This document shows, piece after piece, positions 3,492-64,000 of a stretch of DNA of 64,000 nt. Position 1 is the first letter of the stretch. The number at the start of each line of letters is the position of its first letter. The notes under the pieces were generated by a model. The model had not been told where the DNA came from. It did no database searches and was given only the letters and a program-made list of their open reading frames with translations. A program made the translations under genes and the position numbers. Source of the stretch: Thalia democratica (lineage: Eukaryota); assembly GCA_965202585.1 (NCBI GenBank), contig OZ241834.1, positions 682,001-746,000 of the forward strand. Reading direction: 5' to 3'.

Positions 3492-3494
3492 AGG

Positions 3495-36975: not shown

Positions 36976-38238
36976 ATTAAATTTTTATGTAATACTAAAT
37001 ATAAAGTTGAGAGCATAAACTATCTTAAGATAATAAGGTAAGTAGGAACCTTCTTTTTATTTATTATTTGATAGAAACAACTTTCCAATAGTATCTGAAT
37101 TTGATAAAGCTTTTTTTTTTAACAAGTTTTAACAAGTCCTCTCAAAAAATATTTGATGAAGATGATAAAGACAAAAATTTGAAATATATTTATAAAAACT
37201 GTCTATAAATGCAAAATTTATTTATAAGCATTGATGAAAAAATTCATTCTCTTAATTTTTTGAAAGATGAAATAATAAGGACACCGAAAATGTTCTATAT
37301 ATTTGTTAAGCGCACTATTTATTCTTTCAAGTAATTTTAAATTGTTCTTTGGCTATATACTTTGCGCCAAAACAATGGAAATATCAAACATTATACAAAA
37401 AAGGTAGCAAGTACAACCTTTGAAATTTCGAACTAATCTTTTTGATGAGTAGGTAAGTTTTTTAAGTCACGTGGTAATTTTTTAAACCTTATTTTACCTA
37501 AACAATTTGGTTTTCTTTCTAATAAGTGTACTGAAGTAATTTATACAGAAATCCAAAAATGTTCGACTCTGTCTTTCATTTCAAATTAACAAAAACATTT
37601 TTTGAGTGCAAAATTTATATTAGTCTAGTTAGTTTAAAGGGTTTCTTCATATTATAACCCAAAAAGTAGTAATTAATAACACAATTTAAACCTTTACCGG
37701 TCAAATGGAGTGCCTCAAGAAAGGTATTTAATTGTATGATTGATGTAGCTTCTGAAGTCGATGTAAGCAGCTATACTAATCTCTACTAACGACACAAAAA
37801 AGTTTTAACGATACTAATATAGCCTTAAAAAATTCTTAGATAAAGTTTACCTTTGGCTAAAAGAAGAAAATTTAGCTTAAACTTCTAGTGGCGTAGTAGA
37901 TGTCATGTTTTCAAAAAATACCTTTATCTCTACTTTTGACTTAAAAATAAACTTATCTTTAAAATAAGTGTTTAAAGATTTTTGAATTTTTTTGCTGAAA
38001 ATTTAAAATAGAACCACCATACTAATTAGCTTTACCGATTCATATCGGCTATATGTTTTAAAGTTTTAAATACACGGATATAACATCTTAAAAAAGTTGT
38101 ACTTCTTATAAACTCATCATAAGTTGGAATACAACACACCAGTCTGGTCTCCATACTTTAAAAGATATTATTTATATAGAAATGTTTAAAATTTATATAC
38201 CAGAATAATCTTCAACCGCTGCAATGTTTCTTATACGC

Positions 38239-38533
38239 CAGGGGTCGGCAGCCTTATGTAACTCGCCGGCCAACTTTCTTAAAAAAAAAATTTCTAACGG
38301 GCCGCATTTATTAAAAAAAGGTTCTAGTAATCAGGAAAAATACATTATTTAAGATCAAAAATATAACAATTTAAGCAATATTAGAGGACTAATAAAAAGT
38401 ATTTATTGAAGTAAGAGCCTTACTGTAAGTTTTTATTACAAAATATTTAATTTTTATGTTTTAAAAATGTATGTTTCAGGTTAACTAGGAGCCGCAGATT
38501 TTGACTTTGAAGTCCGCAGTTTACCGACCTCTG
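38239..38533. mobile_element. hAT MITE, right-arm mirror copy of 22728-23058
   Basis: TIR CAGGGGTCGGCA / TACCGACCTCTG. TSD TTATACGC (38231-38238, 38534-38541). Confidence 0.9.
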
Positions 38534-41149: not shown

Positions 41150-41935
41150 TGATTCTTTAAAGAGACAAAGCACCTGCCCAGTCTCCCATGAACTCCACAT
41201 TCGTGGAAGATGTTGTTTCCATTTGTTCACGAGTGAGATGTCATATTTTCCACTTTGCCGTCGTGAGCCTTGTTGAGGTCTTTGATGAAATCAGCAAAGA
41301 AATCTGTCCAATCTGCATATAGTGTCATGCTTGGAATGTGTAAACCTCATTTTGAAACGGATACATTGATTAAGATATTAGGACAATCAGGCGAAGCCAT
41401 CTCCGCACACTCTTGTTTAAAAGGCGGTCAAAATTTCCCATCACGTTTTGCTGGTCTCCGTGAAGTTGAGTTGATTTTTGTCGTGAGGATCTCCCTGATT
41501 TCAGCGGGCAGCGACTGATTTTTTTGAGTTTACTCTACATGTCTTCCAAACTGATTTTTTGTCTCCTGCAGTGTTAATAGAGCTCCAAGATATTTATACT
41601 CGACATGCATTCCATCTGAGGGATTTCAACACCATTAATTATGTAAGATTCTGCCATGTTGTCAATGGTGTATTTGCTTATGGGAAAACAAAGTGGCATA
41701 TTGCGCTTTTTACTGTGTTTATTTGTAGGCTTAACCTCAGTAATTTTTTTAACTAAGATTTCGATTTTTTGGTTGATTTGTGAGTTGTTATTAGCAAAAA
41801 TCACGAGCGCGTCAGCAAATTTATGGCCAACTTTTGTTTTTCCAAAGGAAACTTCATCTTGATTCGTGATAGAGTTCAGGGCTTCGTCTAGCATCAGGTT
41901 GAATAAAAGTGGGGAGAGGGGATCTCCCCAAAAAA
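41150..41935 (-). pseudogene. Non-LTR (R2-like) RT relic, motif 4 to thumb
   Basis: GDPLSPLLFNLMLDEALNSI (motif 4), HKFADALVIF (motif 5, normally FADD), EYKYLG after a frameshift (motif 7), then NKSVRRWLRL/DCPNILINVSVSK*GLHIPS (thumb). Confidence 0.9.
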
Positions 41936-41994
41936 CTTAATCCGGCTAGTTAACAGAATCAAACCGAAAACTATCTAAACTGGAGCATGTACAA

Positions 41995-42095
41995 TAACTA
42001 AAACTGGAAAGAGGGGTAATACAAGGCGACCTCTCTCACTGTTCAACATGGTACTGGACGAAGCACTCAGTAGCATCAAGGACCAAGGAGAGGTA
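41995..42095 (+). pseudogene. Short paralogous RT motif-4 fragment in the opposite orientation
   Basis: KLERGVIQGD, then LFNMVLDEALSSIKDQGEV after a small deletion; homologous to 41850-41930 on the other strand. Confidence 0.8.
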
Positions 42096-42195
42096 CTTTA
42101 ATTTAGTAATTAATGGTTGGCTCTCGTCTTTTATTTCTGGATAACTTTTTTCTAATATATTAGATTTTTTCAAGTCTTTATTTGTTCGTTACAAC

Positions 42196-42275
42196 TGGGT
42201 GTGTGTTGTGCATGTGGAGTCATAAAGAGCGGTTGTTGCTAAATATTTGTTAAATGTGGTTTGACATAATTCGCA
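42196..42275 (-). pseudogene. CCHH zinc-finger remnant of the R2 N-terminal type
   Basis: CELCQTT, then FSNNRSL*LHMHNTHP across an 11-nt insertion. This gives C-x2-C-x3-F-x5-L-x2-H-x4-H-P spacing. Confidence 0.7.
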
Positions 42276-42874
42276 TAATTTGAGTTATGTCGGATGCCGA
42301 GGCGCGATAATCTAACATTCAGCTTTTATGTTCAGGGCTTTCTGTGAGCTGAAGACTTGTTCGTTTCATAATTCGGAATCGGTAAATATCGGAATTTAGC
42401 TGTTACTATTCCAAAAATCAAACTTATTAAATAAAACAGAGAAAAAGAAAGTTTTCATAATTTTTTTTTATCTTTCCTTTTTATAAGAAACCTGAATGAT
42501 CAAAAAAAAATTCATATTTTGTTTAGAATATAGTTTTTTTGTTCAATTTTTATATATGCAAATATAAAATATAACAAAATGTGAGCTAAAAAAACAATAA
42601 TCAGACTAACTGAGATGCAAACCGAAAACTTAATGAAATACAAAGTAAAAAAAAATAATGCTTTGATAATTTTTTTAATTGCAATTTGGGTTTGTCTGAT
42701 AGAATCTATGAAGTTTTTTTTTGAGTCAAAGGGTGTTGATATGTGTTTAATTTTTTTAGTTTTTCTTCTTTTTACTATTATTATTTTTATTTATTGTAGG
42801 ACTGTATAATTGTTTTGTTTCGTTGACTTTAGGGAATTCTGTTCAAGTCTCTTACATTTTCTTTCAAACATTTT

Positions 42875-43093
42875 TCTGTCTAGCACAGCTTGTTAGTTTC
42901 CTTCAATTCCTACGTGGGCTTTTACGTGGGAGAATTTTAATTTTAAATTCTGTTTAATATTCGCATTAGTATGTCTCGGTTTATTACTTAAGTTTTGTTT
43001 TTGGTTAGCCAGCACCTTTTTATATTCTGGTATTTTTTCTATCATAGTTATTGAATATTGGTTATCGGATTTAATGCGAATGTGTTTAAGATT
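42875..43093 (-). pseudogene. Ribonuclease H domain remnant
   Basis: Single frame NLKHIRIKSDNQYSITMIEKI...LKLKFSHVKAHVGIEGN*QA. Matches the RNase HI motifs I.I.SDSQY and HVKAH.G..GNE.AD. Confidence 0.85.
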
Positions 43094-43094
43094 A

Positions 43095-44215
43095 ACAAGT
43101 CATAGACAAACTGACTAAAGAAGGTATCTCAAAGATGGATACTAAGTTGTTGATGAAATGCTTCCTAGATGAAAGAAAAATGCCTCTTGAAAGGTTTAAC
43201 ATGGTTCTGATCCCAAAGCATGAGAGGACAAATCATCCGAACTACTTTATTTTGTCGATAGGGCTAAATTTATTCATTGATATGTATCTATGACAAAAAG
43301 AGCTCTGGAATGCTGAAAGTTATCCCAAATAAAAACAGATAGCTTGCAGCGTGGATTTAAAGCTAAGGAAGGAATCTTGGCGAGGGCAGCGAAGAAAGTA
43401 ATAAAAGTATGTCAGTATCATAAATTAAAAATATATCTGAAGTTCGACAGTGAGAATCACCTGAGGCTGACGGAGGTGCTCAACTGGCACCAACTCAACA
43501 CTCAACTGAAAGATAATTACAAACATGTACAACAGTTCATGTTTGAGAACTTGGTTAAAGAATTTCAATAGGATCTTGTAAGACATAGTGAAGAAAGTAA
43601 TCAACGAAGGAAGAAGTAAATAGCATGTTTAGACCTGAAGAAAGAATTCGACTCGGTTAATCACCTAAAGCTGGTTGAACTCGTCTGGAATACTAAGAAA
43701 AATAAAGGTTCAGACAACGAATTACTAACATGTATAGAGGTAACAGCTTATTCCTGAAAACAGGAGAACAAATCCCGATAGAAAAAGCTACGAAAAAATC
43801 AAATGTCGCCTACGCTCTTCAACCTTACCCTTAACGAAGGCAGAAAATTATCAATATCATGGATAGATCTGAAGAAATCAATCGACTCGGTCAATAATCA
43901 TAAACTGATTGAAGTCCTCAACTCGACTGGCATTCCAAGAAAGATAACTCGACAAATTACTAACATGTATGGTGGAAACAGCTTATATTTGAGAACTGAT
44001 AAAAAAATTCCAATTAAACGTGGGGTACTCCAAGGCGATGTAAATAACAATGATCAATCTTAAATGAAGCGCTTAGAGGTTTCACGGAAGGAATTAAATC
44101 AAAACTACTTTCGCAGTGAACACGGACTTTGGAAGAACTTTGGAAGGTTATAAACAGGGAACCGAAAAACCGATCCACCTGAACATCTGGAAAACCTCGA
44201 GTTCACCACCAACAA
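43095..44215 (+). pseudogene. Non-LTR RT relic, motifs 1-6, scrambled, with a duplicated motif 3-4 segment
   Basis: NMVLIPK, LQRGFKAKEG, IACLDLKKEFDSVNHLKL...ITNMYRGNSLFLKTGEQIPIEK, SPTLFNLTLNE, ISWIDLKKSIDSVNNHKLIEVLNSTGIPRKITRQITNMYGG...IPIKRGVLQGD, NEALRG, IHLNIWKT. Confidence 0.9.
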
Positions 44216-44299
44216 TCATTATAAGTTATTAAAGATCGTGAAGAACAAGTTTATACTTATTTTTTGTAACTTTATTAAAACCGGTTGAAACTATCAAAG

Positions 44300-47200
44300 G
44301 TAAATTTGATAAAATGAATTACTTATGAGTAAATGGAGTACCTTCGTAAAGTGTCGATAGTGTAAACCATCTCAAGATGGTCGAAGTATTGAATTCGCGT
44401 GGAGTATGCAAAATGACTCGTATAATAGCGCATATGAGGTATAGGTGCAATTCTGTCACGCAAAGAACGAATAGCAATAGAACGGGGAAAGAGTTCCAAA
44501 AGAAACATGGATTGTAACAGGAACCAAAATTGACCAACTTTAAACCAGTTGACCCACTCAAGGGTAAGAGTATATTTGAGAAAATGAATTACTTATGAGT
44601 AAATGGAGTACCTTCGTAAAGTGTTCGATAGTGTCAACCATCTCAAGATAGTCGAGGTGTTGAATTCGCGTGGGGTACGAAAAATGACTCGTATAATAGC
44701 GCAAATGTACTGAGGTAACGGTGCATTTCTGCAAATAACAGATAGCAATAAAAGGCGGAAAGAGCTCCAATATAAACATGGATTGTAACAGGAAGCAAAA
44801 ATTGACCAACTTTAAACCAGTTGACCCACTCAAGGGTAAGAGTATATTTGAGAAAATGAATTACTTATGAGTAAATGGAGTACCTTCGTAAAACGTTCGA
44901 TAGTGTCAACCATCTCAAGATAGTCGAGGTGTTGTATTCGGGTGGGGTACGAAAAATGACTCGTATAATAGCGCAAATGTACCGAGGTAAAAGTGCATTT
45001 CTGCAAAGAACAGATAGCAATAAAAGGCGGAAAGAGCTCAAATATAAACATGGATTGTAACAGGAAGCAAAGTTGACCAACTTTAAACCAGTTGACCCAC
45101 TCAAGGGTAAGAGTAAATTTGAGAAAATGAATTACTTATGAGTAAATAAAGTACCTTCGTAAAGTGTTCGATAGTGTCAACCATCTCAAGATAGTCGAGG
45201 TGTTGAATTCGCGTGGGGTACGAAAAATGACTCGTATAATAGCGCAAATGTACCGAGGTAACGGTGCATTTCTGCAAATAACAGATAGCAATAAAAGGCG
45301 GAAAGAGCTCCAATATAAACATGGATTGTAACAGGAGGCAAAATTGACCAACTTTAAACCAGTTGACCCACTCAAGGGTAAGAGTAAATTTGATAAAATC
45401 AATTACTTATGAGTAAATGGAGTACCTTCGTAAAGTGTTCGATAGTGTCAACCATCTCAAGATAGTCGAGGTGTTGAATTTGCGTGGGGTACGAAAAATG
45501 ACTCGTATAATAGCGCAAATGTACCGAGGTAACGGTGCATTTCTGCAAAGAACAGATAGCAATAAAAGGCGGAAAGAGCTCAAATATAAACATGAATTGT
45601 AATAGGAAGCAAAAATTGACCAACTTTAAACCAATTGACCCACTCAAGGGTAAGAGTAAATTTGAGAAAATGAATTACTTATGAGTAAATGGAGTACCTT
45701 CGTAAAGTGTTCGATAGTGTCAACCATCTCAAGATAGTCGAAGTATTGAATTCGCGTTGAGTAGGCAAAATGACTCGTATAATAGCGCATATGAGGTATA
45801 GGTGCAATTCTGTCACGAAAAGAACGAATAGCAATAGAACGGGGAAAGAGTTCCAAAAGAAACATGGATTGTAACAGGAGGCAAAATTGACCAACTTTAA
45901 ACCAGTTGACCCACTCAAGGGTAAGAGTAAATTTGAGAAAATGAATTACTTATGAATAAATGGAGTACCTTCGTAAAGAGTTCGATAGTGTCAATCATCT
46001 TAAGATAGTCGAGGTGTTGAATTCGCGTGGGGTACGAAAAATGACTCGTATAATAGCGCAAATGTACTGAGGTAACGGTGCATTTCTGCAAAGAACAGAT
46101 AGCAATAAAAGGCGGAAAGAGCTCCAATATAAACATGGATTGTAACAATAAGCAAAGTTGACCAACTTTAAACTAGTTGACCCACTCAAGGGTAAGAGTA
46201 AATTTGAGAAAATGAATTACTTATGAGTAAATGGAGTACCTTCGTAAAGTGTTCGATAGTGTCAATCATCTCAAGATAGTCGAGGTGTTGAATTCGCGTG
46301 GGGTACGAAAAATGACTCGTATAATAGCGTATATGAGGTATAGGTGCAATTCTGTCACGAAAAGAACGAATAGCAATAGAACGGGGAAAGAGTTCCAAAA
46401 GAAACATGGATTGTAACAGGAGGCAAAATTGACCAACTTTAAACCAGTTGACCCACTCAAGGGTAAGAGTAAATTTGAGAAAATGAATTACTTATGAATA
46501 AATGGAGTACCTTCGTAAAGAGTTCGATAGTGTCAATCATCTCAAGAGAGTCGAGGTGTTGAATTCGCGTGGGGTACGAAAAATGACTCGTATAATAGCG
46601 CAAATGTACCGAGGTAACGGTGCATTTCTGCAAAGAACAGATAGCAATAAAAGGCGGAAAGAGTTCGAATATAAACATGGATTGTAACAATAAGCAAAGT
46701 TGACCAACTTTAAACCAGTTGACCCACTCAAGGGTAAGAGTAAATTTGAGAAAATGAATTACTTATGAATAAATGGAGTACCTTCGTAAAGTGTTTGATA
46801 GTGTCAACCATCTCAAGATAGTCGAGGTGTTGAATTCGCGTGGGGTACGAAAAATGATTCGTATAATAGCGCAAATGTACCGAGGTAACGGTGCATTTCT
46901 GCAAAGAACAGATAGCAATAAAAGGCGGAATAGCTCCAATATAAACATAGATTCTAACAATAAGCAAAGTTGACCAACTTTAAACCAGTTGACCCACTCA
47001 AGGGTAAGAGTAAATTTGAGAAAATGAACTACTGATGAGTAAATGGAGTACCTTCGTAAAGTGTTCGATAGTGTCAACCATCTCAAGATAGTCGAGGTGT
47101 TGAATTCGCGTGGGGTACGAAAAATGACTCGTATAATAGCGCAAATGTACCGAGGTAACGGTGCATTTCTGCAAAGAACAGATAGCAATAAAAGGCGGAA

Positions 47201-50200
47201 AGAGCTCCAATATAAACATGGATTGTAACAATAAGCAAAGTTGACCAACTTTAAACCAGTTGACCAACTCAAGGGTAAGAGTAAATTTGATAAAATGAAT
47301 TACTTATGAGTAAATGGAGTACCTTCGTAAAGTGTTCGATAGTGTAAACCATCTCAAGTTAGTCGAGGTGTTGAATTCGCGTTGGGTACGAAAAATGACT
47401 CGTATAATAGCGCAAATGTACCGAGGTAACGGTGCATTTCTGCAAATAACAGATAGCAATAAAAGGCGGAAAGAGCTCCAATATAAACATGGATTGTAAC
47501 AATAAGCAAAGTTGACCAACTTTAAACCAGTTGACCCACTCAAGGGTAAGAGTAAATTTGAGAAAATGAATTACTTATGAGTAAATGGAGTACCTTCGTA
47601 AAGTGTTCGATAGTGTCAACCATCTCAAGATAGTCGAGGTGTTGAATTCGCGTGGGGTCCCAAGCAAAATAACTCGAATAATAGCGCAAACGTACCAAGG
47701 TAACGGAGCATTTTTGCAAATAATAGATAGCAATAAAAGGCGGAAAGAGCTCAAATATAAACATGAATTGTAACAGGAGGCAAAGTTGACCAACTTTAAA
47801 CCAGTTGACCCACTCAAGGGTTAGAGTAAATTTGAGAAAATGAATTACTTATGAGTAAATGGAGTACCTTCGTAAAACGTTCGATAGTGTCAACCATCTC
47901 AAGATAGTCGAGGTGTTGAATTCGCGTGGGGTACGAAAAATGACTCGTATAATAGCGCAAATGTACCGAGGTAACGGTGCATTTCTGCAAAGAACAGATA
48001 GCAATAAAAGGCGGAAAGAGCTCAAATATAAACATGAATTGTAACAGGAGGCAAAGTTGACCAACTTTAAACCAGTTGACCCACTCAAGGGTAAGAGTAA
48101 ATTTGAGAAAATGAATTACTTATGAGTAAATGGAGTACCTTCGTAAAACGTTCGATAGTGTCAACCATCTCAAGATAGTCGAGGTGTTGAATTCGCGTGG
48201 GGTACGAAAAATGACTCGTATAATAGCGCAAATGTACCGAGGTAACGGTGCATTTCTGCAAAGAACAGATAGCAATAAAAGGCGGAAAGAGCTCAAATAT
48301 AAACATGAATTGTAACAGGAGGCAAAGTTGACCAACTTTAAACCAGTTGACCCACTCAAGGGTAAGAGTAAATTTGAGAAAATGAATTACTTATGAGTAA
48401 ATGGAGTACCTTCGTAAAGTGTTCGATAGTGTCAACCATCTCAAAATAGTCGAGGTGTTGAATTCGCGTGGGGTACGAAAAATGACTCATATAATAGCGC
48501 AAATGTACCGAGGTAACGGTGCATTTCTGCAATTAACAGATAGCAATAAAAGGCGGAAAGAGCTCAAATATAAACATGAATTGTAACAGGAGGCAAAGTT
48601 GACCAACTTTAAACCAGTTGACCCACTCAAGGGTTAGAGTAAATTTGAGAAAATGAATTACTTATGAGTAAATGGAGTACCTTCGTAAAACGTTCGATAG
48701 TGTCAACCATCTCAAGATAGTCGAGGTGTTGAATTCGCGTGGGGTACGAAAAATGACTCATATAATAGCGCAAATGTACCGAGGTAACGGTGCATTTCTG
48801 CAAATAACAGATAGCAATAAAAGGCGGAAAGAGCTCCAATATAAACATGGATTGTAACAATAAGCAAAGTTGACCAACTTTAAACCAGTTGACCCACTCA
48901 AGGGTAAGAGTAAATTTGATAAAATGAATTACTTATGAGTAAATGGAGTACCTTCGTAAAGTGTTCGATAGTGTCAACCATCTCAAGATAGTCGAGGTGT
49001 TGAATTCGCGTGGGATACGAAAAATGACTCGTATAATAGCGCAAATGTACCGAGGTAACGGTGCATTTCTGCAAATAACAGATAGCAATAAAAGGCGGAA
49101 AGACCTCAAATATAAACATGGATTGTAACAATAAGCAAAGTTGACCAACTTTAAACCAGTTGACCCACTCAAGGGTAAGAGTAAATTTGATAAAATGAAT
49201 TACTTATGAGTAAATGGAGTACCTTCGTAAAGTGTTCGATAGTGTCAATCATCTCAAGATAGTCGAGGTGTTGAATTCGCGTGGGGTACGAAAAATGACT
49301 CGTATAATAGCGCAAATGTACCGAGGTAACGGTGCATTTCTGCAAAGAGCAGATAGCAATAAAAGGCGGAAAGAGCTCCAATATAAACATGGATTGTAAC
49401 AGGAGGCAAAGTTGACCAACTTTAAACCAGTTGACCCACTCAAGGGTAAGAGTAAATTTGAGAAAATGAATTACTTATGAGTAAATGGAGTACCTTCGTA
49501 AAGTGTTCGATAGTGTCAACCATCTCAAGATAGTCGAAGTATTGAATTGGCGTTGAGTAGGCAAAATGACTCGTATAATAGCGCATATGAGGTATAGGTG
49601 CAATTCTGTCACAAAAAGAACGAATAGCAATTGAACGGGGAAAGAGTTCCAAAAGAAACATGGATTGTAACAGGAGGCAAAATTGACCAACTTTAAACCA
49701 GTTGACCCACTCAAGGGTAAGAGTAAATTTGAGAAAATGAATTACTTATGAGTAAATGGAGTACCTTCGTAAAGTGTTCGATAGTGTCAACCATCTCAAG
49801 AGAGTCGAGGTGTTGTATTCGCGTGGGGTACGAAAAATGACTCGTATAATAGCGCAAATGTACCGAGGTAACGGTGCATTTCTGCAAAGAACAGATAGCA
49901 ATAAAAGGCGGAAAGAGCTCAAATATAAACATGGATTGTAACAGGAGGCAAAGTTGACCAACTTTAAACCAGTTGACCCACTCAAGGGTAAGAGTAAATT
50001 TGAGAAAATGAATTACTTATGAGTAAATGGAGTACCTTCGTAAAGTGTTCGATAGTGTCAACCATTTCAAGATAGTCGAGGTGTTGTATTCGCGTGGGGT
50101 ACGAAAAATGACTCGTATAATAGCGCAAATGTACCGAGGTAACAGTGCATTTCTGCAAAGAACAGATAGCAATAAAAGGCGGAAAGAGCTCAAATATAAA

Positions 50201-53200
50201 CATGGATTGTAACAGGAAGCAAAAGTTGACCAACTTTAAACCAGTTGACCCACTCAAGGGTAAGAGTAAATTTGAGAAAATGAATTACTTATGAGTAAAT
50301 GAAGTACCTTCGTAAAACGTTCGATAGTGTCAACCATCTCAAGATAGTCGAGGTGTTGAATTCGCGTGGGGTACGAAAAATAACTCGTATAATAGCGCAA
50401 ATGTACCGAGGTAACGGTGCATTTCTGCAAAGAACAGATAGCAATAAAAGGCGGAAACAGCTTAAATATAAACATGGATTGTAACAGGAGGCAAAGTTGA
50501 CCAACTTTAAACCAGTTGACCCACTCAAGGGTAAGAGTAAATTTGAGAAAATGAATTACTTATGAGTAAATGGAGTACCTTCGTAAAGTGTTCGATAGTG
50601 TCAACCATCTCAAGAGAGTCGAGGTGTTGTATTCGCGTGGGGTACGAAAAATGACTCGTATAATAGCGCAAATGTACCGAGGTAACGGTGCATTTCTGCA
50701 AAGAACAGATAGCAATAAAAGGCGGAAAGAGCTCAAATATAAACATGGATTGTAACAGGAGGCAAAGTTGACCAACTTTAAACCAGTTGACCCACTCAAG
50801 GGTAAGAGTAAATTTGAGAAAATGAATTACTTATGAGTAAATGGAGTACCTTCGTAAAGTGTTCGATAGTGTCAACCATTTCAAGATAGTCGAGGTGTTG
50901 TATTCGCGTGGGGTACGAAAAATGACTCGTATAATAGCGCAAATGTACCGAGGTAACAGTGCATTTCTGCAAAGAACAGATAGCAATAAAAGGCGGAAAG
51001 AGCTCAAATATAAACATGGATTGTAACAGGAAGCAAAAGTTGACCAACTTTAAACCAGTTGACCCACTCAAGGGTAAGAGTAAATTTGAGAAAATGAATT
51101 ACTTATGAGTAAATGAAGTACCTTCGTAAAACGTTCGATAGTGTCAACCATCTCAAGATAGTCGAGGTGTTGAATTCGCGTGGGGTACGAAAAATAACTC
51201 GTATAATAGCGCAAATGTACCGAGGTAACAGTGCATTTCTGCAAAGAACAGATAGCAATAAAAGGCGGAAAGAGCTTAAATATAAACATGGATTGTAACA
51301 GGAGGCAAAGTTGACCAACTTTAAACCAGTTGACCCACTCAAGGGTAAGAGTAAATTTGAGAAAATGAATTACTTATGAGTATATGAAGTACCTTCGTAA
51401 AGTGTTCGATACTATCAACCATTTCAAGATAGTCGAGGTGTTGGATTCGCTTGGGGTACGAAAAATGACTCGTATAATAGCGCAAATGTACCGAGGTAAC
51501 GGTGCATTTCTGCAAAGAACAGATAGCAATAAAAGGCGGAAAGAGCTCAAATATAAACATGGATTGTAACAGGAGGCAAAGTTGACCAACTTTAAACCAG
51601 TTGACCCACTCAGCGGTAAGAGTAAATTTGAGAAAATGAATTACTTATGAGTATATGGAGTACCTTCGTAAAGTGTTCGATACTGTCAACCATCTCAAGA
51701 TAGTCGAGGTGTTGTATTCGCGTGGGATACGATAAATGACTCGTATAATAGCGCAAATGTACCGAGGTAACGGTGCATTTCTGCAAAGAACAGATAGCAA
51801 TAAAAGGCGGAAAGAGCTCCAATATAAACATGGATTGTAACAGGAAGCAAAAGTTGACCAACTTTAAACCAGTTGACCCACTCAAGGGTAAGAGTAAATT
51901 TGAGAAAATGAATTACTTATGAGTATATGGAGTACCTTCGTAAAGTGTTCGATAGTGTCAACCATCTCAAGATAGTCGAGGTGTTGAATTCGCGTGGGGT
52001 ACGAAAAATGACTCGTATAATAACGCAAATGTACCGAGGTAACGGTGCATTTCTGCAAATAACAGATAGCAATAAAAGGCGGAAAGAGCTCAAATATAAA
52101 CATGGATTGTAACAGGAAGCAAAATTGACCAACTTTAAACCAGTTGACCCAATAAAGGGTAAGAGTAAATTTGAGAAAATGAACTACTTATGAGTAAATG
52201 GAGTACCTTCGTAAAGTGTTCGATACTGTCAACCATCTCAAGATAGTCGAGGTGTTGAATTCGCGTTGGGTACGAAAAATGACTCGTACAATAGCGCAAA
52301 TGTACCGAGGTAACGATGCATTTCTGCAAAGAACAGATAGCAATAAAAGGCGGAAAGAACTCCAATATAAACATGGATTGTAACAATAAGCAAAGTTGAC
52401 CAACTTTAAACCAGTTGACCCACTCAAGGGTAAGAGTAAATTTGAGAAAATGAATTACTTATGAGCAAATGGAGTACCTTCGTAAAGTGTTCGATAGTGT
52501 CAACCATCTCAAGATAGTCGAGGTGTTGAATTTGCGTGGGGTACGAAAAATGACTCGTATAATAGCGCAAATGTACCGAGGTAACGGTGCATTTTTGCAA
52601 AGAACAGATAGCAATAAAAGGCGGAAAGAGCTCCAATATAAACATGGATTGTAACAATAAGCAAAGTTGACCAACTTTAAACCAGTTGACCCACTCAAGG
52701 GTAAGAGTAAATTTGAGAAAATGAATTACTTATGAGTAAATGGAGTACCTTCGTAAAGTGTTCGATAGTGTCAACCATCTCAAGATAGTCGAGGTGTTGA
52801 ATTCGCGTGGGGTACGAAAAATGACTCGTACAATAGCGCAAATGTACCGAGGTAACGGTGCATTTTTGCAAAGAACAGATAGCAATAAAAGGCGGAAAGA
52901 GCTCCAATATAAACATGGATTGTAACAATAAGCAAAGTTGACCAACTTTAAACCAGTTGACCCACTCAAGGGTAAGAGTAAATTTGAGAAAATGAATTAC
53001 TTATGAGTAAATGGAGTACCTTCGTAAAGTGTTCGATAGTGTCAACCATCTCAAGATAGTCGAGGTGTTGAATTCGCGTGGGGTACGAAAAATGACTCGT
53101 ACAATAGCGCAAATGTACCGAGGTAACGGTGCATTTCTGCAAAGAACAGATAGCAATAAAAAGCGGAAAGAGCTCCAATATAAACATAGATTGTAACAAT

Positions 53201-56200
53201 AAGCAAAGTTGACCAACTTTAAACCAGTTGACCCACTCAAGGGTAAGAGTAAATTTGAGAAAATGAAATACTTATGAGTAAATGGAGTACCTTCGTAAAG
53301 TGTTCGATAGTGTCAACCATCTCAAGATAGTCGAGGTGTTGAATTCGCGTGGGGTACGAAAAATAACTTGTATAATAGCGCAAATGTACCGAGGTAACGG
53401 TGCATTTCTGCAAATAACAGATAGCAATAAAAGGCGGAAAGAGCTCCAATATAAACATGGATTGTAACAATAAGCAAAGTTGACCAACTTTAAACCAGTT
53501 GACCCACTCAAGGGTAAGAGTAAATTTGATAAAATGAAATACTTATGAGTAAATGGAGTACCTTCGTAAAGTGTTCGATAGTGTCAACCATCTCAAGATA
53601 GTCGAGGTGTTGAATTCGCGTGGGGTACGAAAAATGACTCGTATAATAGCGCAAATGTACCGAGGTAACGGTGCATTTCTGCAAATAACAGATAGCAATA
53701 AAAGGCGGAAAGAGCTCCAATATAAACATGGATTGTAACAATAAGCAAAGTTGACCAACTTTAAACCAGTTGACCCACTCAAGGGTAAGAGTAAATTTGA
53801 GAAAATGAATTACTTATGAGTAAATGGAGTACCTTCGTAAAGTGTTCGATAGTGTCAACCATCTCAAGATAGTCGAGGTGTTGAATTCGCGTGGGGTACG
53901 AAAAATGACTCGTATAATAGCGCAAATGTACCGAGGTAACGGTGCATTTCTTTAAAGAACAGATAGCAATAAAAGGCGAAAGAGCTCCATAGATTGTAAC
54001 AATAAGCAAAATTGACCAACAAAAAACCAATTGACCCACTCAAGGGTAAGAGTAAATTTGAGAAAATGAATTACTTATGAGTAAATTGAATTCCTTCGTA
54101 AAGTGTTCGATAGTGTAAACCATCTCAAGATAGTCGAGGTGTTGAATTCGCGTGGGGTACGAAAAATGACTCGTATAATAGCGCAAATGTACCGAGGTAA
54201 CGGTGCATTTCTGCAAAGAACAGATAGCAATAAAAGGCGGAAAGAGCTCCAATATAAACATGGATTGTAACAATAAGCAAAGTTGACCAACTTTAAACCA
54301 ATTGACCCACTCAAGGGTAAGAGTAAATTTGAGAAAATGAAATACTTATGAGTAAATGGAGTACCTTCGTAAAGTGTTCGATAGTGTCAACCATCTCAAG
54401 ATAGTCGAGGTGTTGAATTCGCGTGGGGTACGAAAAATGACTCGTATAATAGCGCAAATGTACCGAGGTAACGGTGCATTTCTGCAAATAACAGATAGCA
54501 ATAAAAGGCGGAAAGAGCTCCAATATAAACATGGATTGTAACAGGAAGCAAAGTTGACCAACTTTAAACCAGTTGACCCACTCAAGGGTAAGAGTAAATT
54601 TGAGAAAATGAATTACTTATGAGTAAATGGAGTACCTTCGTAAAGTGTTCGATAGTGTCAACCATCTCAAGATAGTCGAGGTGTTAAATTCGCGTGGGGT
54701 ACGAAAAATGACTCGTATAATAGCGCAAATGTACCGAGGTAACGGTGCATTTCTGCAAAGAACAGATTACAATAAAAGGCGGAAAGAGCTCCAATATAAA
54801 CATGGATTGTAACAGGAGGCAAAGTTGACCAACTTTAAACTAGTTGACCCACTCAAGGGTAAGAGTAAATTTGAGAAAATGAAACACTTATGAGTAAATG
54901 GAGTACCTTCGTAAAGTGTTCGATAGTGTCAACCATCTCAAGATAGTCGAGGTGTTGAATTCGCGTGGGGTACGAAAAATGACTCGTACAATAGCGCAAA
55001 TGTACCGAGGTAACGGTGCATTTCTGCAAAGAACAGATAGCAATAAAAGGCGGAAAGAGCTCCAATATAAACATAGATTGTAACAATAAGCAAAGTTGAC
55101 CAACTTTAAACCAGTTGACCAATTTAAGGGTAAGAGTAAATTTGAGAAAATGAATTACTTATGAGTAAATGGAGTACCTTCGTAAAACGTTCGATAGTGT
55201 CAACCATCTCAAGATAGTCGAGGTGTTGAATTCGCGTGGGGTACGAAAAATGAGTATAATAGCGCATATGTACAGAGGTAACGGTGCATTTCTGCAAAGA
55301 ACAGATAACAATAAAAGGCGGAAAGAGCTCCAATATAAACATGGATTGTAACAATAAGCAAAGTTGACCAACTTTAAACCAGTTGACCAACTCAAGGGTA
55401 AGAGTAAATTTGAGAAAATGAATTACTATGAGTAAATGGAGTACCTTCGTAAAGTGTTCGATAGTGTCAACCATCTCAAGATAGTCGAGGTGTTGAATTC
55501 GCGTGGGGTACGAAAAATGACTCGTATAATAGCGTATATGAGGTATAGGTGCAATTCTGTCACGAAAAGAACGAATAGCAATAGAACGGGGAAAGAGTTC
55601 CAAAAGAAACATGGATTGTAACAGGGGGCAAAGTTGACCAACTTTAAACCAGTTGACCCACTCAAGGGTAAGAGTAAATTTGAGAAAATGAATTACTTAT
55701 GAGTAAATGGGGTACCTTCGTAAAGTGTTCGATAGTGTCAACCATCTCAAGATAGTCGAGGTGTTGAATTCGCGTGGGGTACGAAAAATGACTCGTATAA
55801 TAGCGCAAATGTACCGAGGTAACGGTGCATTTCTGCAAATAACAGATAGCAATAAAAGGCGGAAAGAGCTCCAATATAAACATGGATTGTAACAGGAAGC
55901 AAAGTTGACCAACTTTAAACCAGTTGACCCACTCAAGGGTAAGAGTAAATTTGATAAAATGAATTACTTATGAGTAAATGGAGTACCTTCGTAAAGTGTT
56001 CGATAGTGTCAACCATCTCAAGATAGTCGAGGTGTTAAATTCGCGTGGGGTACGAAAAATGACTCGTATAATAGCGCAAATGTACCGAGGTAACGGTGCA
56101 TTTCTGCAAAGAACAGATTACAATAAAAGGCGGAAAGAGCTCCAATATAAACATGGATTGTAACAGGAGGCAAAGTTGACCAACTTTAAACTAGTTGACC

Positions 56201-59200
56201 CACTCAAGGGTAAGAGTAAATTTGAGAAAATGAAACACTTATGAGTAAATGGAGTACCTTCGTAAAGTGTTCGATAGTGTCAACCATCTCAAGATAGTCG
56301 AGGTGTTGAATTCGCGTGGGGTACGAAAAATGACTCGTACAATAGCGCAAATGTACCGAGGTAACGGTGCATTTCTGCAAAGAACAGATAGCAATAAAAG
56401 GCGGAAAGAGCTCCAATATAAACATAGATTGTAACAATAAGCAAAGTTGACCAACTTTAAACCAGTTGACCAATTTAAGGGTAAGAGTAAATTTGAGAAA
56501 ATGAATTACTTATGAGTAAATGGAGTACCTTCGTAAAACGTTCGATAGTGTCAACCATCTCAAGATAGTCGAGGTGTTGAATTCGCGTGGGGTACGAAAA
56601 ATGACTCGTATAATAGCGCATATGTACAGAGGTAACGGTGCATTTCTGCAAAGAACAGATAACAATAAAAGGCGGAAAGAGCTCCAATATAAACATGGAT
56701 TGTAACAATAAGCAAAGTTGACCAACTTTAAACCAGTTGACCAACTCAAGGGTAAGAGTAAATTTGAGAAAATGAATTACTATGAGTAAATGGAGTACCT
56801 TCGTAAAGTGTTCGATAGTGTCAACCATCTCAAGATAGTCGAGGTGTTGAATTCGCGTGGGGTACGAAAAATGACTCGTATAATAGCGTATATGAGGTAT
56901 AGGTGCAATTCTGTCACGAAAAGAACGAATAGCAATAGAACGGGGAAAGAGTTCCAAAAGAAACATGGATTGTAACAGGAGGCAAAGTTGACCAACTTTA
57001 AACCAGTTGACCCACTCAAGGGTAAGAGTAAATTTGAGAAAATGAATTACTTATGAGTAAATGGGGTACCTTCGTAAAGTGTTCGATAGTGTCAACCATC
57101 TCAAGATAGTCGAGGTGTTGAATTCGCGTGGGGTACGAAAAATGACTCGTATAATAGCGCAAATGTACCGAGGTAACGGTGCATTTCTGCAAAGAACAGA
57201 TAGCAATAAAAGGCGGAAAGAGCTCAAATATAAACATGGATTGTAACAGGAAGCAAAGTTGACAAAATTTAAACCAGTTGACCCACTCAAGGGTAAGAGT
57301 AAATTTGATAAAATGAATTACTTATGAGTAAATGGAGTACCTTCGTAAAGTGTTCGATAGTGTCAACCATCTCAAGATAGTCGAGGTGTTGTATTCGCGT
57401 GGGGTATGAAAAATGACTCGTATAATAGCACAAATGTACCGAGGTAACGGTGCATTTCTGCAAAGAACAGATAGCAATAAAAGGCGGAAAGAGCTCCAAT
57501 ATAAACATGGATTGTAACAGGAAGCAAAGTTGTAAAAATTTAAACCAGTTGACCCACTCAAGGGTAAGAGTAAATTTGAGAAAATGAATTACTTATGAGT
57601 AAATGGAGTACCTTCGTAAAGTGTTCGATAGTGTCAACCATCTCAAGATAGTCGAGTTGTTAATTTGCGTGGGGTACGAAAAATGACTCGTATAATAGCG
57701 CATATGTACCGAGGTAACGGTGCATTTCTGCAAAGAACGGATAGCAATAAAAGGCGGAAAGAGCTCCAATATAAACATGGATTGTAACAGAAGGCAAAGT
57801 TGACCAACTTTAAACCAGTTGACCCACTCAAGGGTAAGAGTAAATTTGAGAAAATGAATTACTTATGAGTAAATGGAGTACCTTCGTAAAGTGTTCGATA
57901 GTGTCAACCATCTCAAGATAGTCGAGGTGTTGAATTTGCGTGGGGTACGAAAAATGACTCGTATAATAGCGCAAATGTACCGAGGTAACGGTGCATTTCT
58001 GCAAAGAACAGATAGCAATAAAAGGCGGAAAGAGCTCCAATATAAACATGGATTGTAACAATAAGCAAAGTAGACCAACTTTAAACCAGTTGACCAACTC
58101 AAGGGTAAGAGTAAATTTGATAAAATGAATTACTTATGAGTAAATGCAGTACCTTCGTAAAGTGTTCGATAGTGTCAACCATCTCAAGATAGTCGAGGTG
58201 TTGAATTCGCGTGGGGTACGAAAAATGACTCGTATAATAGCGCAAATGTACCGAGGTAACGGTGCATTTCTGCAAAGAACAGATAGCAATAAAAGGCGGA
58301 AAGAGCTCAAATATAAACATGGATTGTAACAGGAAGCAAAGTTGACCAACTTTAAACCAGTTGACCCACTCAAGGGTAAGAGTAAATTTGAGAAAATGAA
58401 TTACTTATGAGTAAATGGAGTACCTTCGTAAAGTGTTCGATAGTGTCAACCATCTCAAGATAGTCGAGGTGTTGAATTCGCGTGGGGTACAAAAAATGAC
58501 TCGAATAATAGCGCAAATGTACCGAGGTAACGGTGCATTTCTGCAAATAACAGATAGCAATAAAAGGCGGAAAGAGCTCCAATATAAACATGGATTGTAA
58601 CAATAAGCAAAGTTGACCAACTTTAAACCAGTTGACCAACTCAAGGGTAAGAGTAAATTTGATAAAATGAATTACTTATGAGTAAATGCAGTACCTTCGT
58701 AAAGTGTTCGATAGTGTCAACCATCTCAAGTTAGTCGAGGTGTTGAATTCGCGTGGGGTACGAAAAATGACTCGTATAATAGCGCAAATGTACCGAGGTA
58801 ACGGTGCATTTCTGCAAAGAACAGATAGCAATAAAAGGCGGAAAGAGCTCCAATATAAACATGGATTGTAACAATAAGCAAAGTTGACCAACTTTAAACC
58901 AATTGACCCACTCAAGGGTAAGAGTAAATTTGAGAAAATGAATTACTTATGAGTAAATGCAGTACCTTCGTAAAGTGTTCGATAGTGTCAACCATCTCAA
59001 GTTAGTCGAGGTGTTGTATTCGCGTGGGGTACGAAAAATGACTCGTATAATAGCGCAAATGTACCGAGGTAACGATGCACTTCTGCAAAGAACAGATAGC
59101 AATAAAAAGTGGAAAGAACTCCAATATAACCATGGATTGTAACAGGAGGCAAAATTGACCAACTTTAAACCAGTTGACCCACTCAAGGGTAAGAGTAAAT

Positions 59201-62200
59201 TTGAGAAAATGAATTACTTATGAGTAAATGGAGTACCTTCGTAAAGTGTTCGATAGTGTCAACCATCTCAAGATAGTCGAGGTGTTAAATTCGCGTGGGG
59301 TACGAAAAATGACTCGTATAATACCGCAAATGTACCGAGGTAACGGTGCATTTCTGCAAAGAACAGATAGCAATAAAAGGCGGAAAGAGCTCCAATATAA
59401 ACATGGATTGTAACAATAAGCAAAGTTGACCAACTTTAAACCAGTTGACCCACTCAAGGGTAAGAGTAAATTTGAGAAAATGAAATACTTATGAGTAAAT
59501 GGAGTACCTTCGTAAAACGTTCGATAGTGTCAACCATCTCAAGAGAGTCGAGGTGTTGAATTCGCGTGGGGTACGAAAAATGACTCGTATAATAGCGCAA
59601 ATGTACCGAGGTAACGGTGCATTTCTGCAAAGAACAGATAGCAATAAAAGGCGGAAAGAGCTCCAATATAAACATAGATTGTAACAATAAGCAAAGTTGA
59701 CCAACTTTAAACCAGTTGACCAATTTAAGGGTAAGAGTAAATTTGAGAAAATGAATTACTTATGAGTAAATGGAGTACCTTCGTAAAACGTTCGATAGTG
59801 TCAACCATCTCAAGATAGTCGAGGTGTTGAATTCGCGTGGGGTACGAAAAATGACTCGTATAATAGCGCATATGTACAGAGGTAACGGTGCATTTCTGCA
59901 AAGAACAGATAACAATAAAAGGCGGAAAGAGCTCCAATATAAACATGGATTGTAACAATAAGCAAAGTTGACCAACTTTAAACCAGTTGACCAACTCAAG
60001 GGTAAGAGTAAATTTGAGAAAATGAATTACTATGAGTAAATGGAGTACCTTCGTAAAGTGTTCGATAGTGTCAACCATCTCAAGATAGTCGAGGTGTTGA
60101 ATTCGCGTGGGGTACGAAAAATGACTCGTATAATAGCGTATATGAGGTATAGGTGCAATTCTGTCACGAAAAGAACGAATAGCAATAGAACGGGGAAAGA
60201 GTTCCAAAAGAAACATGGATTGTAACAGGAGGCAAAGTTGACCAACTTTAAACCAGTTGACCCACTCAAGGGTAAGAGTAAATTTGAGAAAATGAATTAC
60301 TTATGAGTAAATGGGGTACCTTCGTAAAGTGTTCGATAGTGTCAACCATCTCAAGATAGTCGAGGTGTTGAATTCGCGTGGGGTACGAAAAATGACTCGT
60401 ATAATAGCGCAAATGTACCGAGGTAACGGTGCATTTCTGCAAAGAACAGATAGCAATAAAAGGCGGAAAGAGCTCAAATATAAACATGGATTGTAACAGG
60501 AAGCAAAGTTGACAAAATTTAAACCAGTTGACCCACTCAAGGGTAAGAGTAAATTTGATAAAATGAATTACTTATGAGTAAATGGAGTACCTTCGTAAAG
60601 TGTTCGATAGTGTCAACCATCTCAAGATAGTCGAGGTGTTGTATTCGCGTGGGGTATGAAAAATGACTCGTATAATAGCACAAATGTACCGAGGTAACGG
60701 TGCATTTCTGCAAAGAACAGATAGCAATAAAAGGCGGAAAGAGCTCCAATATAAACATGGATTGTAACAGGAAGCAAAGTTGTAAAAATTTAAACCAGTT
60801 GACCCACTCAAGGGTAAGAGTAAATTTGAGAAAATGAATTACTTATGAGTAAATGGAGTACCTTCGTAAAGTGTTCGATAGTGTCAACCATCTCAAGATA
60901 GTCGAGTTGTTAATTTGCGTGGGGTACGAAAAATGACTCGTATAATAGCGCATATGTACCGAGGTAACGGTGCATTTCTGCAAAGAACGGATAGCAATAA
61001 AAGGCGGAAAGAGCTCCAATATAAACATGGATTGTAACAGAAGGCAAAGTTGACCAACTTTAAACCAGTTGACCCACTCAAGGGTAAGAGTAAATTTGAG
61101 AAAATGAATTACTTATGAGTAAATGGAGTACCTTCGTAAAGTGTTCGATAGTGTCAACCATCTCAAGATAGTCGAGGTGTTGAATTTGCGTGGGGTACGA
61201 AAAATGACTCGTATAATAGCGCAAATGTACCGAGGTAACGGTGCATTTCTGCAAAGAACAGATAGCAATAAAAGGCGGAAAGAGCTCCAATATAAACATG
61301 GATTGTAACAATAAGCAAAGTTGACCAACTTTAAACCAGTTGACCAACTCAAGGGTAAGAGTAAATTTGATAAAATGAATTACTTATGAGTAAATGCAGT
61401 ACCTTCGTAAAGTGTTCGATAGTGTCAACCATCTCAAGATAGTCGAGGTGTTGAATTCGCGTGGGGTACGAAAAATGACTCGTATAATAGCGCAAATGTA
61501 CCGAGGTAACGGTGCATTTCTGCAAAGAACAGATAGCAATAAAAGGCGGAAAGAGCTCAAATATAAACATGGATTGTAACAGGAAGCAAAGTTGACCAAC
61601 TTTAAACCAGTTGACCCACTCAAGGGTAAGAGTAAATTTGAGAAAATGAATTACTTATGAGTAAATGGAGTACCTTCGTAAAGTGTTCGATAGTGTCAAC
61701 CATCTCAAGATAGTCGAGGTGTTGAATTCGCGTGGGGTACAAAAAATGACTCGAATAATAGCGCAAATGTACCGAGGTAACGGTGCATTTCTGCAAATAA
61801 CAGATAGCAATAAAAGGCGGAAAGAGCTCCAATATAAACATGGATTGTAACAATAAGCAAAGTTGACCAACTTTAAACCAGTTGACCAACTCAAGGGTAA
61901 GAGTAAATTTGATAAAATGAATTACTTATGAGTAAATGCAGTACCTTCGTAAAGTGTTCGATAGTGTCAACCATCTCAAGTTAGTCGAGGTGTTGAATTC
62001 GCGTGGGGTACGAAAAATGACTCGTATAATAGCGCAAATGTACCGAGGTAACGGTGCATTTCTGCAAAGAACAGATAGCAATAAAAGGCGGAAAGAGCTC
62101 CAATATAAACATGGATTGTAACAATAAGCAAAGTTGACCAACTTTAAACCAATTGACCCACTCAAGGGTAAGAGTAAATTTGAGAAAATGAATTACTTAT

Positions 62201-64000
62201 GAGTAAATGCAGTACCTTCGTAAAGTGTTCGATAGTGTCAACCATCTCAAGTTAGTCGAGGTGTTGTATTCGCGTGGGGTACGAAAAATGACTCGTATAA
62301 TAGCGCAAATGTACCGAGGTAACGATGCACTTCTGCAAAGAACAGATAGCAATAAAAAGTGGAAAGAACTCCAATATAACCATGGATTGTAACAGGAGGC
62401 AAAATTGACCAACTTTAAACCAGTTGACCCACTCAAGGGTAAGAGTAAATTTGAGAAAATGAATTACTTATGAGTAAATGGAGTACCTTCGTAAAGTGTT
62501 CGATAGTGTCAACCATCTCAAGATAGTCGAGGTGTTAAATTCGCGTGGGGTACGAAAAATGACTCGTATAATACCGCAAATGTACCGAGGTAACGGTGCA
62601 TTTCTGCAAAGAACAGATAGCAATAAAAGGCGGAAAGAGCTCCAATATAAACATGGATTGTAACAATAAGCAAAGTTGACCAACTTTAAACCAGTTGACC
62701 CACTCAAGGGTAAGAGTAAATTTGAGAAAATGAAATACTTATGAGTAAATGGAGTACCTTCGTAAAACGTTCGATAGTGTCAACCATCTCAAGAGAGTCG
62801 AGGTGTTGAATTCGCGTGGGGTACGAAAAATGACTCGTATAATAGCGCAAATGTACCGAGGTAACGGTGCATTTCTGCAAAGAACAGATAGCAATAAAAG
62901 GCGGAAAGAGCTCCAATATAAACATGGATTGTAACAATAAGCAAAGTTGACCAACTTTAAACCAGTTGACCAACTCAAGGGTAAGAGTAAATTTGATAAA
63001 ATGAATTACTTATGAGTAAATGGAGTACCTTCGTAAAACGTTCGATAGTGTCAACCATCTCAAGAGAGTCGAGGTGTTGAATTCGCGTGGGGTACGAAAA
63101 ATGACTCGTATAATAGCGCAAATGTACCGAGGTAACGGTGCATTTCTGCAAAGAACAGATTACAATAAAAGGCGGAAAGAGCTCCAATATAAACATGGAT
63201 TGTAACAGGAGGCAAAGTTGACCAACTTTAAACCAGTTGACCCACTCAAGGGTAAGAGTAAATTTGAGAAAATGAATTACTTATGAGTAAATGGAGTACC
63301 TTCGTAAAGTGTTCGATAGTGTCAACCATCTCAAGATAGTCGAGGTGTTAATTTGCGTGGGGTACGAAAAATGACTCGTATAATAGCGCAAATGTACCGA
63401 TGTAACGGTGCATTTCTGCAAATAACAGATAGCAATAAAAGGCGGAAAGAGCTCCAATATAAACATGGATTGTAACAGGAGGCAAAGTTGACCAACTTTA
63501 AACCAGTTGACCCACTCAAGGGTAAGAGTAAATTTGAGAAAATGAATTACTTATGAGTAAATGGAGTACCTTCGTAAAGTGTTCGATAGTGTCAACCATC
63601 TCAAGATAGTCGAGGTGTTAATTTGCGTGGGGTACGAAAAATGACTCGTATAATAGCGCAAATGTACCGATGTAACGGTGCATTTCTGCAAAGAACAGAT
63701 AGCAATAAAAGGCGGAAAGAGCTCAAATATTAACATGGATTGTAACAATAAGCAAAGTTGACCAACTTTAAACCAGTTGACCAACTCAAGGGTAAGAGTA
63801 AATTTGAGAAAATGAATTACTTATGAGTAAATGGAGTACCTTCGTAAAGTGTTCGATAGTGTCAACCATCTCAAGATAGTCGAGGTGTTGTATTCGCGTG
63901 GGGTACGAAAAATGACTCGTATAATAGCGCAAATGTACCGAGGTAACGGTGCATTTCTGCAAAGAACAGATAGCAATAAAAGGCGGAAAGAGCTCCAATA
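44300..64000. repeat. Satellite array 3: ~72 tandem 271-bp units derived from RT motif 3-4 sequence (RT sense on plus strand); runs off the window end
   Basis: ORF starts are spaced 270-272 bp (46231, 46502, 46773, 47043, 47314...). Units translate YLRKVFDSVNHLKIVEVLNSRGVRKMTRIIAQMYRGN, which aligns to the adjacent relic DLKK(E/S)(F/I)DSVN...EVLNSTGIPRKITRQITNMY(R/G)GN. Confidence 0.97.

Follow-up and report, generated by a model that had tools for sequence, protein, structure and literature searches.

A 271-bp tandem array in Thalia democratica is non-coding satellite DNA that probably derives from an R2 retrotransposon ORF

Introduction

A long array of 271-bp tandem repeats in the genome of Thalia democratica lies directly beside the decayed remains of a retrotransposon reverse transcriptase (RT) gene, which raises the question of where such a satellite comes from and whether it was born in place from its neighbor. 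The array was noticed in a stretch of 64,000 nucleotides, C10:682001-746000, where C10 is contig OZ241834.1 of an 801.8-Mb assembly; this whole stretch is referred to below as the window. A first reading made from the sequence alone (the sequence-only reading) described a 20-kb satellite built from RT motifs 3-4 and adjacent to its source relic, as a snapshot of satellite birth inside a retrotransposon open reading frame (ORF). We consider it likely that the array is a non-coding satellite that derives from the ORF of an R2 retrotransposon and that was amplified and shortened from a longer repeat.

Extent and coding status of the array

Tandem Repeats Finder reported a single array in the window at 44300-64000, with a period of 271, 72.7 copies and 94% matches. 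A BLAST search of the window with one unit returned 73 consecutive head-to-tail units on the plus strand at a spacing of 270-272 bp, the first of which was the most diverged (87% to the query unit). Unit homology begins at 44275, and the start of the array lies at 44275-44300. Its right part was read from 20 kb of the contig beyond the window end, for which positions are given as window equivalents. The satellite is real, and it exceeds the 20 kb first claimed for it:

44275 to 64000, on to C10:758990 (window-equivalent 76990), plus strand: 271-bp satellite array, ~120 units, 32.7 kb
44300 to 44563, plus strand: first unit, an old or edge variant, 83% identical to the core consensus and 88.7% to units of other loci
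56488 to 62990, plus strand: duplicated 12-unit block (3.25 kb) within the array, two copies ~100% identical
Window-equivalent 76239 to 76780, plus strand: last two full units, of the old type by unit comparison

The array thus has the long head-to-tail run of near-identical units that characterizes satellite DNA, interior units having a mean identity of 96.8% to the core consensus. Its units are also non-coding: there are stops in every frame, the longest ORFs reach ~60-90 residues and, because 271 equals 3x90+1, the frame moves by one base per unit, so that nothing is encoded. The edge units (the first and the last two full ones) share 87-89% identity with units of other loci versus 74-84% with the core, and edge and core variants each retain some ancestral bases. 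The 12-unit block reflects either a recent local duplication or an effect of assembly, and a pervasive 12-unit higher-order repeat was rejected, as the lag-12 signal comes from this one duplicated block. The single-strand fold of the unit was not unusual (z -0.58), and an Rfam scan of the window detected neither rRNA nor any other RNA family. In the whole assembly there are ~150 units of the 271-bp satellite at ~5-7 loci, which lie either toward the ends of two contigs or on a single small contig; the low number of units and the few near-end loci argue against a centromeric satellite.

The unit joins two pieces of an R2 ORF

Alignment to the R2 copies of the same genome, which are described below, accounts for the whole 271 bp as two non-adjacent pieces of an R2 ORF that are joined to each other, both in sense orientation. 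In a representative unit they lie as follows:

44606 to 44759, plus strand: Part B (unit positions ~43-196), R2 RT motifs 3-4, ORF residues ~413-466
44760 to 44876, plus strand: Part A (unit positions ~197-271 and, from the following unit, 1-42), N-terminal linker of R2, residues ~171-215

Part B matches the intact R2 ORFs with expectation values (E) of 5e-8 to 2e-11 (tblastn) and is 70-76% identical at the DNA level to the R2 copies residing in the ribosomal DNA (rDNA), in agreement with the earlier claim that the unit holds RT motifs 3-4 of an element lacking long terminal repeats (a non-LTR element). The peptide resemblances behind that claim are real as well: translation of the unit gives 'YLRKVFDSVNHLKIVEVLNSRG...QMYRGNGAFL', a shifted frame contains 'EQIAIKGG', and, when the relic ORF (43803-44060) was compared with the entire genome in all six frames, more than 100 units matched at E 1e-6 to 1e-4.

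The sequence-only reading left ~105 bp of the unit without an origin; these remaining ~105-130 bp correspond to R2 ORF residues ~171-215. In tblastn, the N-terminal part of the ORF of an R2 copy on contig C6 aligned to the units over its residues 185-211 (27 residues, 81% identical), and unit positions 178-271 plus 1-45 align to this C6 copy with 72% DNA identity (E 1e-19; blastn). The peptides read 'EFQKKHG..NFKPVDPLKGKSK..LLMSKW' in the C6 copy and 'ELQYKHGL*..NFKPVDPLKGKSK..LLMSKW' in the unit. In the C6 copy, the source region of Part A is found ~630 bp upstream of the RT segment and sits in an ORF that is colinear with intact R2, so derivation ran from R2 to satellite and not the reverse. 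The A-to-B joint of the unit falls within a shared 'ATGGA'. With its significant homology to transposon coding sequence, the unit is that of a transposon-ORF-derived satellite, although this significance was reached only with the genome's own R2 copies, since the satellite ORF alone was not significant against Pfam (RVT_1 E 0.14).

The source family is R2

Intact relatives of the element occur on contigs C79, C37 and C9, where their ORFs span 990, 977 and 963 residues, respectively. These ORFs match RVT_1 at E 1e-32 (Pfam), and the Pfam scan returned no match to an apurinic/apyrimidinic (AP) endonuclease (Exo_endo_phos). The element thus has the single ORF (~980 residues), central RT and lack of AP endonuclease that are typical of R2, and its best named relatives are 'R2DM' proteins with 28% identity. 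In addition, it is inserted at a specific site of the 28S rRNA gene. At the C79 locus (L052), the large subunit rRNA gene (Rfam, 631-8501) contains an insertion at ~3137-7375; its 28S sequence runs up to '..GACTCTCTT|' and starts again with '|CAAATGCCTCGTCATC..', and this interruption at GACTCTCTT/CAAATGCCTCGTCATC is what we take to be the canonical R2 site. An exact-word search for the R2 target in the 28S sequence gave no match, and fuzzy matching recovered both junctions; the L052 copy lacks, at its junction, the eight bases 'AAGGTAGC' that span the point of insertion. The C37 locus is 93% identical to the C79 locus over 8.7 kb. Elements of the R2 clade also have an N-terminal zinc finger and, at the C-terminus, a CCHC motif with a restriction-like endonuclease; here the R2 ORF gave a weak C2H2 match (E 0.004), and a C-terminal pattern 'C..C..H..C, RHN, KPD, D..K' was read by eye in the translation. 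On the evidence of its ORF and insertion site, the source family is a genuine R2.

Copies outside the rDNA include the broken C6 copy (L054) and 5'-truncated copies on C9, which are the closest relatives of the relic left of the array. Two further copies, at C9:3.63 and 3.68 Mb, have an ordinary 5' truncation and carry no array. Both (L056:4898-6833 and L057:4411-6338) begin at residue ~325 and their RT cores are 99% identical; the two are probably a segmental duplication. Further R2-like fragments cluster at C9:3.69-3.72 Mb.

Other features of the rDNA unit were also recorded. U2 and U5 small nuclear RNA genes lie just downstream of the 28S gene (L052:9089-9480 on C79, and likewise at the C37 locus), and a 66-bp tandem repeat is found in the spacer at L052 8627-8926. 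Outside this genome, the rDNA-resident R2 protein has its closest relative on a marine metagenome contig (L058; Tara Oceans, PRJEB4352), with 55% identity.

The neighboring relic belongs to another R2 lineage

The R2-derived sequence that precedes the array has the same orientation, as had been stated, and consists of four segments:

43101 to 43571, plus strand: relic copy 1, R2 ORF residues ~294-432 (RT motifs 0-3), of the C6/C9 type, decayed
43570 to 43847, plus strand: relic copy 2, residues ~396-487 (motifs 3-5, including 'MSPTLFNL')
43848 to 44099, plus strand: relic copy 3, residues ~401-471, ending 'GVLQGD'; RVT_1 E 5.9e-5, below the gathering score
44091 to 44231, plus strand: N-terminal linker, residues ~256-290, out of order, at the same position in paralogous loci

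The RT homology of copy 3 ends at ~44039. In coordinates of the C6 copy, the flank reads 4355-4870, 4654-4933, 4705-4963 and ~4179-4284, followed by 4017-4087 into the array. A profile of 71 units matches the flank in the same orientation, with unit positions 55-189 corresponding to 43641-43782 (E 8.6e-5), 62-196 to 43882-44024 (E 0.003) and, as a weak third match, 60-106 to 43442-43488 (E 0.39). A blastn comparison of the flank with a unit dimer gave nothing left of 44275, so that the profile search was needed. The homology between unit and relic that had been put at about 165 bp holds, at a slightly shorter length of about 135-142 bp and ~52-62% identity.

This arrangement favors the proposal that the array was born at this locus from the relic, with the serial RT copies at 43625-44035 as proto-repeats: the relic has the orientation of the array, stands directly beside it and repeats the RT segment three times. 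The lineages speak against it. We compared the RT core of seven unit variants, relic copies 1-3 and the C79, C37, C6 and C9 copies in a 153-column alignment. All seven unit variants, and hence every variant of Part B, group with the rDNA-resident lineage, represented by C79 (71-75% identity) and C37 (67-69%), whereas relic copies 1-3 group with the C6 and C9 copies and share 52-62% identity with the units; the split between the two groups has an ultrafast bootstrap (UFboot) value of 100. Part A, which is nearest to the C6 type (67-70% versus 39-47%), cannot come from the relic either, because the relic begins at residue ~294 and the residues ~171-215 fall outside its span. The adjacent relic is thus not the direct source of the unit, and neither half can be derived from the relic as it stands; the phrase 'adjacent to its source relic' is not supported. 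The R2 copy that gave rise to the unit came either from a lineage without a surviving or sampled copy or from a join of two lineages.

A join of this kind could in principle have been made in a single aberrant reverse transcription, in which template switching between R2 RNAs produced the mosaic that was later amplified. The R2 enzyme is able to jump between templates, every piece is in sense orientation and out of order, and the two lineages stand side by side at homologous windows of the ORF. The known jumps are end-to-end and not internal, neither a 3' end nor poly(A), an untranslated region or target sequence from the 28S gene accompanies the mosaic, and ordinary deletion and duplication explain the same data. 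We therefore regard this origin as very improbable.

Paralogous loci share the junction of relic and array

The relic and the start of the array are part of a module that recurs elsewhere, with an upstream flank defined by alignment:

37852 to 43100, plus strand: upstream flank common to paralogous loci (aligned to C10:3.51 Mb, C9:0.74 Mb and C9:0.697 Mb)

Window positions 37852-44600 are 91% identical over 6.9 kb to C10:3.51 Mb (inverted), and positions 40042-44600 are 86% identical to C9:0.74 Mb. These two loci carry the same relic followed by 5.5-12 units each, so that flank, relic and junction are common to three loci and the window does not offer a snapshot of satellite birth at a unique site. 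In a fourth paralogue at C9:0.697 Mb (L040), the flank is 82% identical from 41960 onward and the duplications of the relic are present without the 271-bp unit; its homology to the window breaks at ~44112, and its relic continues colinearly through the RT to the C-terminal domain. Because this locus has the duplications without any unit, the duplications of the relic predate the 271-bp array. Their greater age and the sharing of the junction among three loci add to the evidence of lineage and span given above, and birth of the array from the left relic is largely refuted and improbable.

The shared junctions bear on two further explanations. The length of the array or its junctions might be artefacts of assembly, as the identical 3.25-kb block that occurs twice inside the array could suggest. 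This is the least credible of the alternatives considered, since the assembly contains the left junction three times, each independently, in paralogues that have diverged, and the units differ by ~3-6% with positional structure. Short-read contigs from four runs and up to four organisms carry relic and units, and a single contig of 682 nt spans 43612-44313, from the relic into the array. In the likely source sample, the summed contig depth of the units was roughly 20-100 fold that of the relic, which, with depth as a rough guide, is compatible with ~150 units versus 3-4 relic copies. Evidence from RNA data sets was negligible, with a tenth of the words in one fish-gut metatranscriptome. Small shares of the words of relic and array were seen in marine metagenome runs, in keeping with a planktonic marine animal.

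Flank, relic and array might also be a composite mobile element with internal repeats that transposed and whose repeats then expanded. Such an element would explain why one left junction, and likewise one right flank, recurs at three loci each, and the expansion of satellites from tandem repeats inside transposons is well documented (PMC7004042, PMC9659126). This is unlikely in view of only ~5-7 loci, confined to a small contig and to the end regions of two others, and of flanks that are long (4.5-6.9 kb), show graded identity (82-91%) and contain unrelated fragments, as in segmental duplication. No termini or target-site duplications were recognized, although no systematic search for them was made.

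At the right edge, Part A does not jump to Part B and continues colinearly into R2 ORF residues ~216-262. The alignment of window-equivalent 76995-77099 to the C6 copy past the A/B break scored 37.5, compared with 12.3 ± 1.8 for shuffled sequences. This continuation, together with the piece of residues 256-290 at the left edge, suggests that ancestral units were longer. From window-equivalent 77358 onward, the right flank is 88% identical to the sequence that follows 1.5-2.5 units at C1007 and C10:3.459 Mb. The possibility that this locus is the sole bearer of both junctions was considered and is weakened by C10:3.459-3.509 Mb, which may be a full inverted paralogue.

More distant R2-like sequence lies on both sides of the array on the opposite strand:

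41388 to 41936, minus strand: distant R2-like RT fragment, residues ~466-658, 28% identity
Window-equivalent 77839 to 79506 (C10:759839-761506; L025:3839-5506), minus strand: longer distant R2-like copy just right of the array

These two fragments, both ~28% identical to the intact R2 ORFs, share ~69% DNA identity with each other.

Origin of the array

R2-derived DNA is thus found on both sides of the array, as a scrambled relic on the left and as a colinear ORF continuation on the right, and the module of flank, relic and array recurs, with widely differing numbers of units, in several paralogous loci toward the ends of two large contigs. The origin that we favor from R2 by amplification and shortening would have proceeded in the following way. 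A piece of R2 covering at least residues ~171-470 (~0.9 kb) would have become tandemly repeated, and an internal deletion (residues ~216-412) between 'ATGGA' microhomologies would then have generated the 271-bp form. Unequal exchange may have carried this form through the interior to ~120 copies while the edges kept remnants of the longer unit, and the module would have been copied between loci by segmental duplication before the final expansion. The part of the earlier claim that is retained is accordingly amplification within a decayed element, as the best reading of satellite birth inside a retrotransposon ORF; a unique birth site is not.

Several observations weigh against this scheme. The postulated long unit of ~0.9 kb survives in no intact copy, and the pieces at the left edge (relic copy 3, residues 256-290 and Part A from ~193) need extra deletions. 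Since Part A is nearest to the C6 type and Part B to C79/C37, a single source copy requires an unsampled lineage. The microhomology account of the joints, which we infer, fits less well at the B-to-A joint, where a 3-bp 'CGG' overlap is combined with about 4 extra bases. Finally, independent support for the junction comes from short-read contigs only.

Taken together, the genome offers an unusually legible series of states in the turning of a transposon gene into satellite DNA, from intact R2 in the rDNA through decayed copies outside it and a relic in which an ORF segment stands 2-3 times in tandem to paralogue arrays of 5-24 units and an array of 120 units with older, longer forms at its edges. 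The neighboring relic and the RT half of the unit belong to different lineages, which shows that proximity does not prove parentage.

Sister satellites and other repeats

The 271-bp satellite appears to be one of at least four R2-derived satellites in the genome, the others having units of 211, 163 and 92 bp:

L030:1-8328 (C1007), C10:3496001-3500585, C10:3459493-3464000 and C9:700796-704412: 211-bp satellite, R2 residues 596-670
C10:3502386-3506296 (L026/L027) and L040:2074-2589: 163-bp satellite, R2 residues 616-670
1 to 3491 of the window, minus strand: 92-bp satellite, weak tblastn match to R2 residues ~651-680, not part of the 271-bp array

The 211-bp satellite is of the C79 type, with 70-72% DNA identity to the rDNA-resident lineage versus 55% to the C6 copy, and at three loci it directly adjoins 271-bp units. 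The colinear residues 545-595 precede it at C10:3.5006 Mb. The 163-bp satellite is of the C6 type (77% versus 60%). On C10 it forms 24 units between two 271-bp blocks, whereas at C9:0.698 Mb (L040) there are only three units, in their natural ORF position, to which the C10 units are 91-98% identical; the three-unit state would appear to be the proto-state of the 24-unit array. In the rDNA R2 locus, only ORF positions 5004-5160 and 5547-5665 match the arrays, and neither R2 untranslated regions nor 28S or other rDNA sequence was found in or beside the 271-, 211-, 163- and 92-bp arrays.

These satellites bring up a broader explanation, namely that the same windows of the R2 ORF (~400-490 and ~596-680) were repeatedly and independently made tandem in at least three R2 lineages. 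The lineages concerned are the C6 type (triple RT copy and 163-bp satellite), the C79 type (Part B and 211-bp satellite) and the distant lineage of the 92-bp satellite, and the repeats from all of them are concentrated in shared duplicated regions close to contig ends. We consider this doubtful, although it retains some plausibility. If it were true, the arrays might be kept as a source of small RNAs against R2, or RNA or cDNA of the active rDNA-lineage R2 might be captured at relics during break repair; a recurrence of ORF windows that is not due to chance would indicate a link between R2 biology and the formation or retention of satellites.

Two other repeats were noted. A 258-bp satellite in the window (3495-7561 and 12096-17095; 81-83% matches) showed no homology to the R2 ORFs used. 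Contig C1 starts with a long CCCTAA/TTAGGG run (C1:79-870), and there are ~9,500 genome-wide matches to six TTAGGG repeats, from which we conclude that the telomere repeat is the vertebrate-type hexamer.

Comparison with known systems

Satellites derived from non-LTR ORFs have been described in chicken (HinfI, from CR1 ORF2), Phodopus (PROsat, from L1 ORF2) and the harbour seal (Pvc20, from L1 ORF2) (PMC9659126). As in these cases, the monomer studied here is homologous to part of a non-LTR ORF and forms a non-coding, homogenized array. It differs in that its source is R2, a clade characterized by a restriction-like endonuclease and 28S-specific insertion, in that its unit consists of two non-contiguous pieces and in that several satellites arose from the same ORF. 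A literature search found no satellite derived from the R2 ORF, which is not proof of absence.

In Drosophila melanogaster, R1 forms a megabase tandem array with internally deleted variants (McGurk and Barbash 2018, PMC5932611). There too an rDNA-specific non-LTR element is arrayed outside functional rDNA, and internal deletions and internal-to-internal junctions arose and were spread by unequal exchange. The R1 units are near full-length and separated by a 33-nt 28S target duplication, whereas the units here measure 271 bp and contain neither element ends nor target-site duplication nor other 28S sequence. Short internally deleted elements (SIDEs), which are non-autonomous R2 elements (PMC3414825), are likewise R2 derivatives that arose by internal deletion. 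They have retained their 3' end as well as the 5' ribozyme and transpose into the 28S gene; the present unit retains neither of these regions and consists of internal ORF only, in tandem.

The Ogre-derived arrays of Fabeae, in which satellites come from tandem repeats inside retrotransposons (PMC7004042), resemble the present case in that a few copies within the element precede a long array, as for the 163-bp satellite with 3 versus 24 units. The plant cases involve untranslated regions of LTR elements, whereas a non-LTR ORF is involved here. Within the same window, the 92-bp satellite is a further piece of an R2-like ORF, by its weak tblastn match, and it differs in its unit, in the residues covered, in lying on the opposite strand and in belonging to a more distant R2-like lineage. 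Satellites from transposon ORFs are thus already known, and what is unusual here is the two-piece unit, the mixed lineage affinities of its halves and the presence of at least four satellites that appear to derive from R2.

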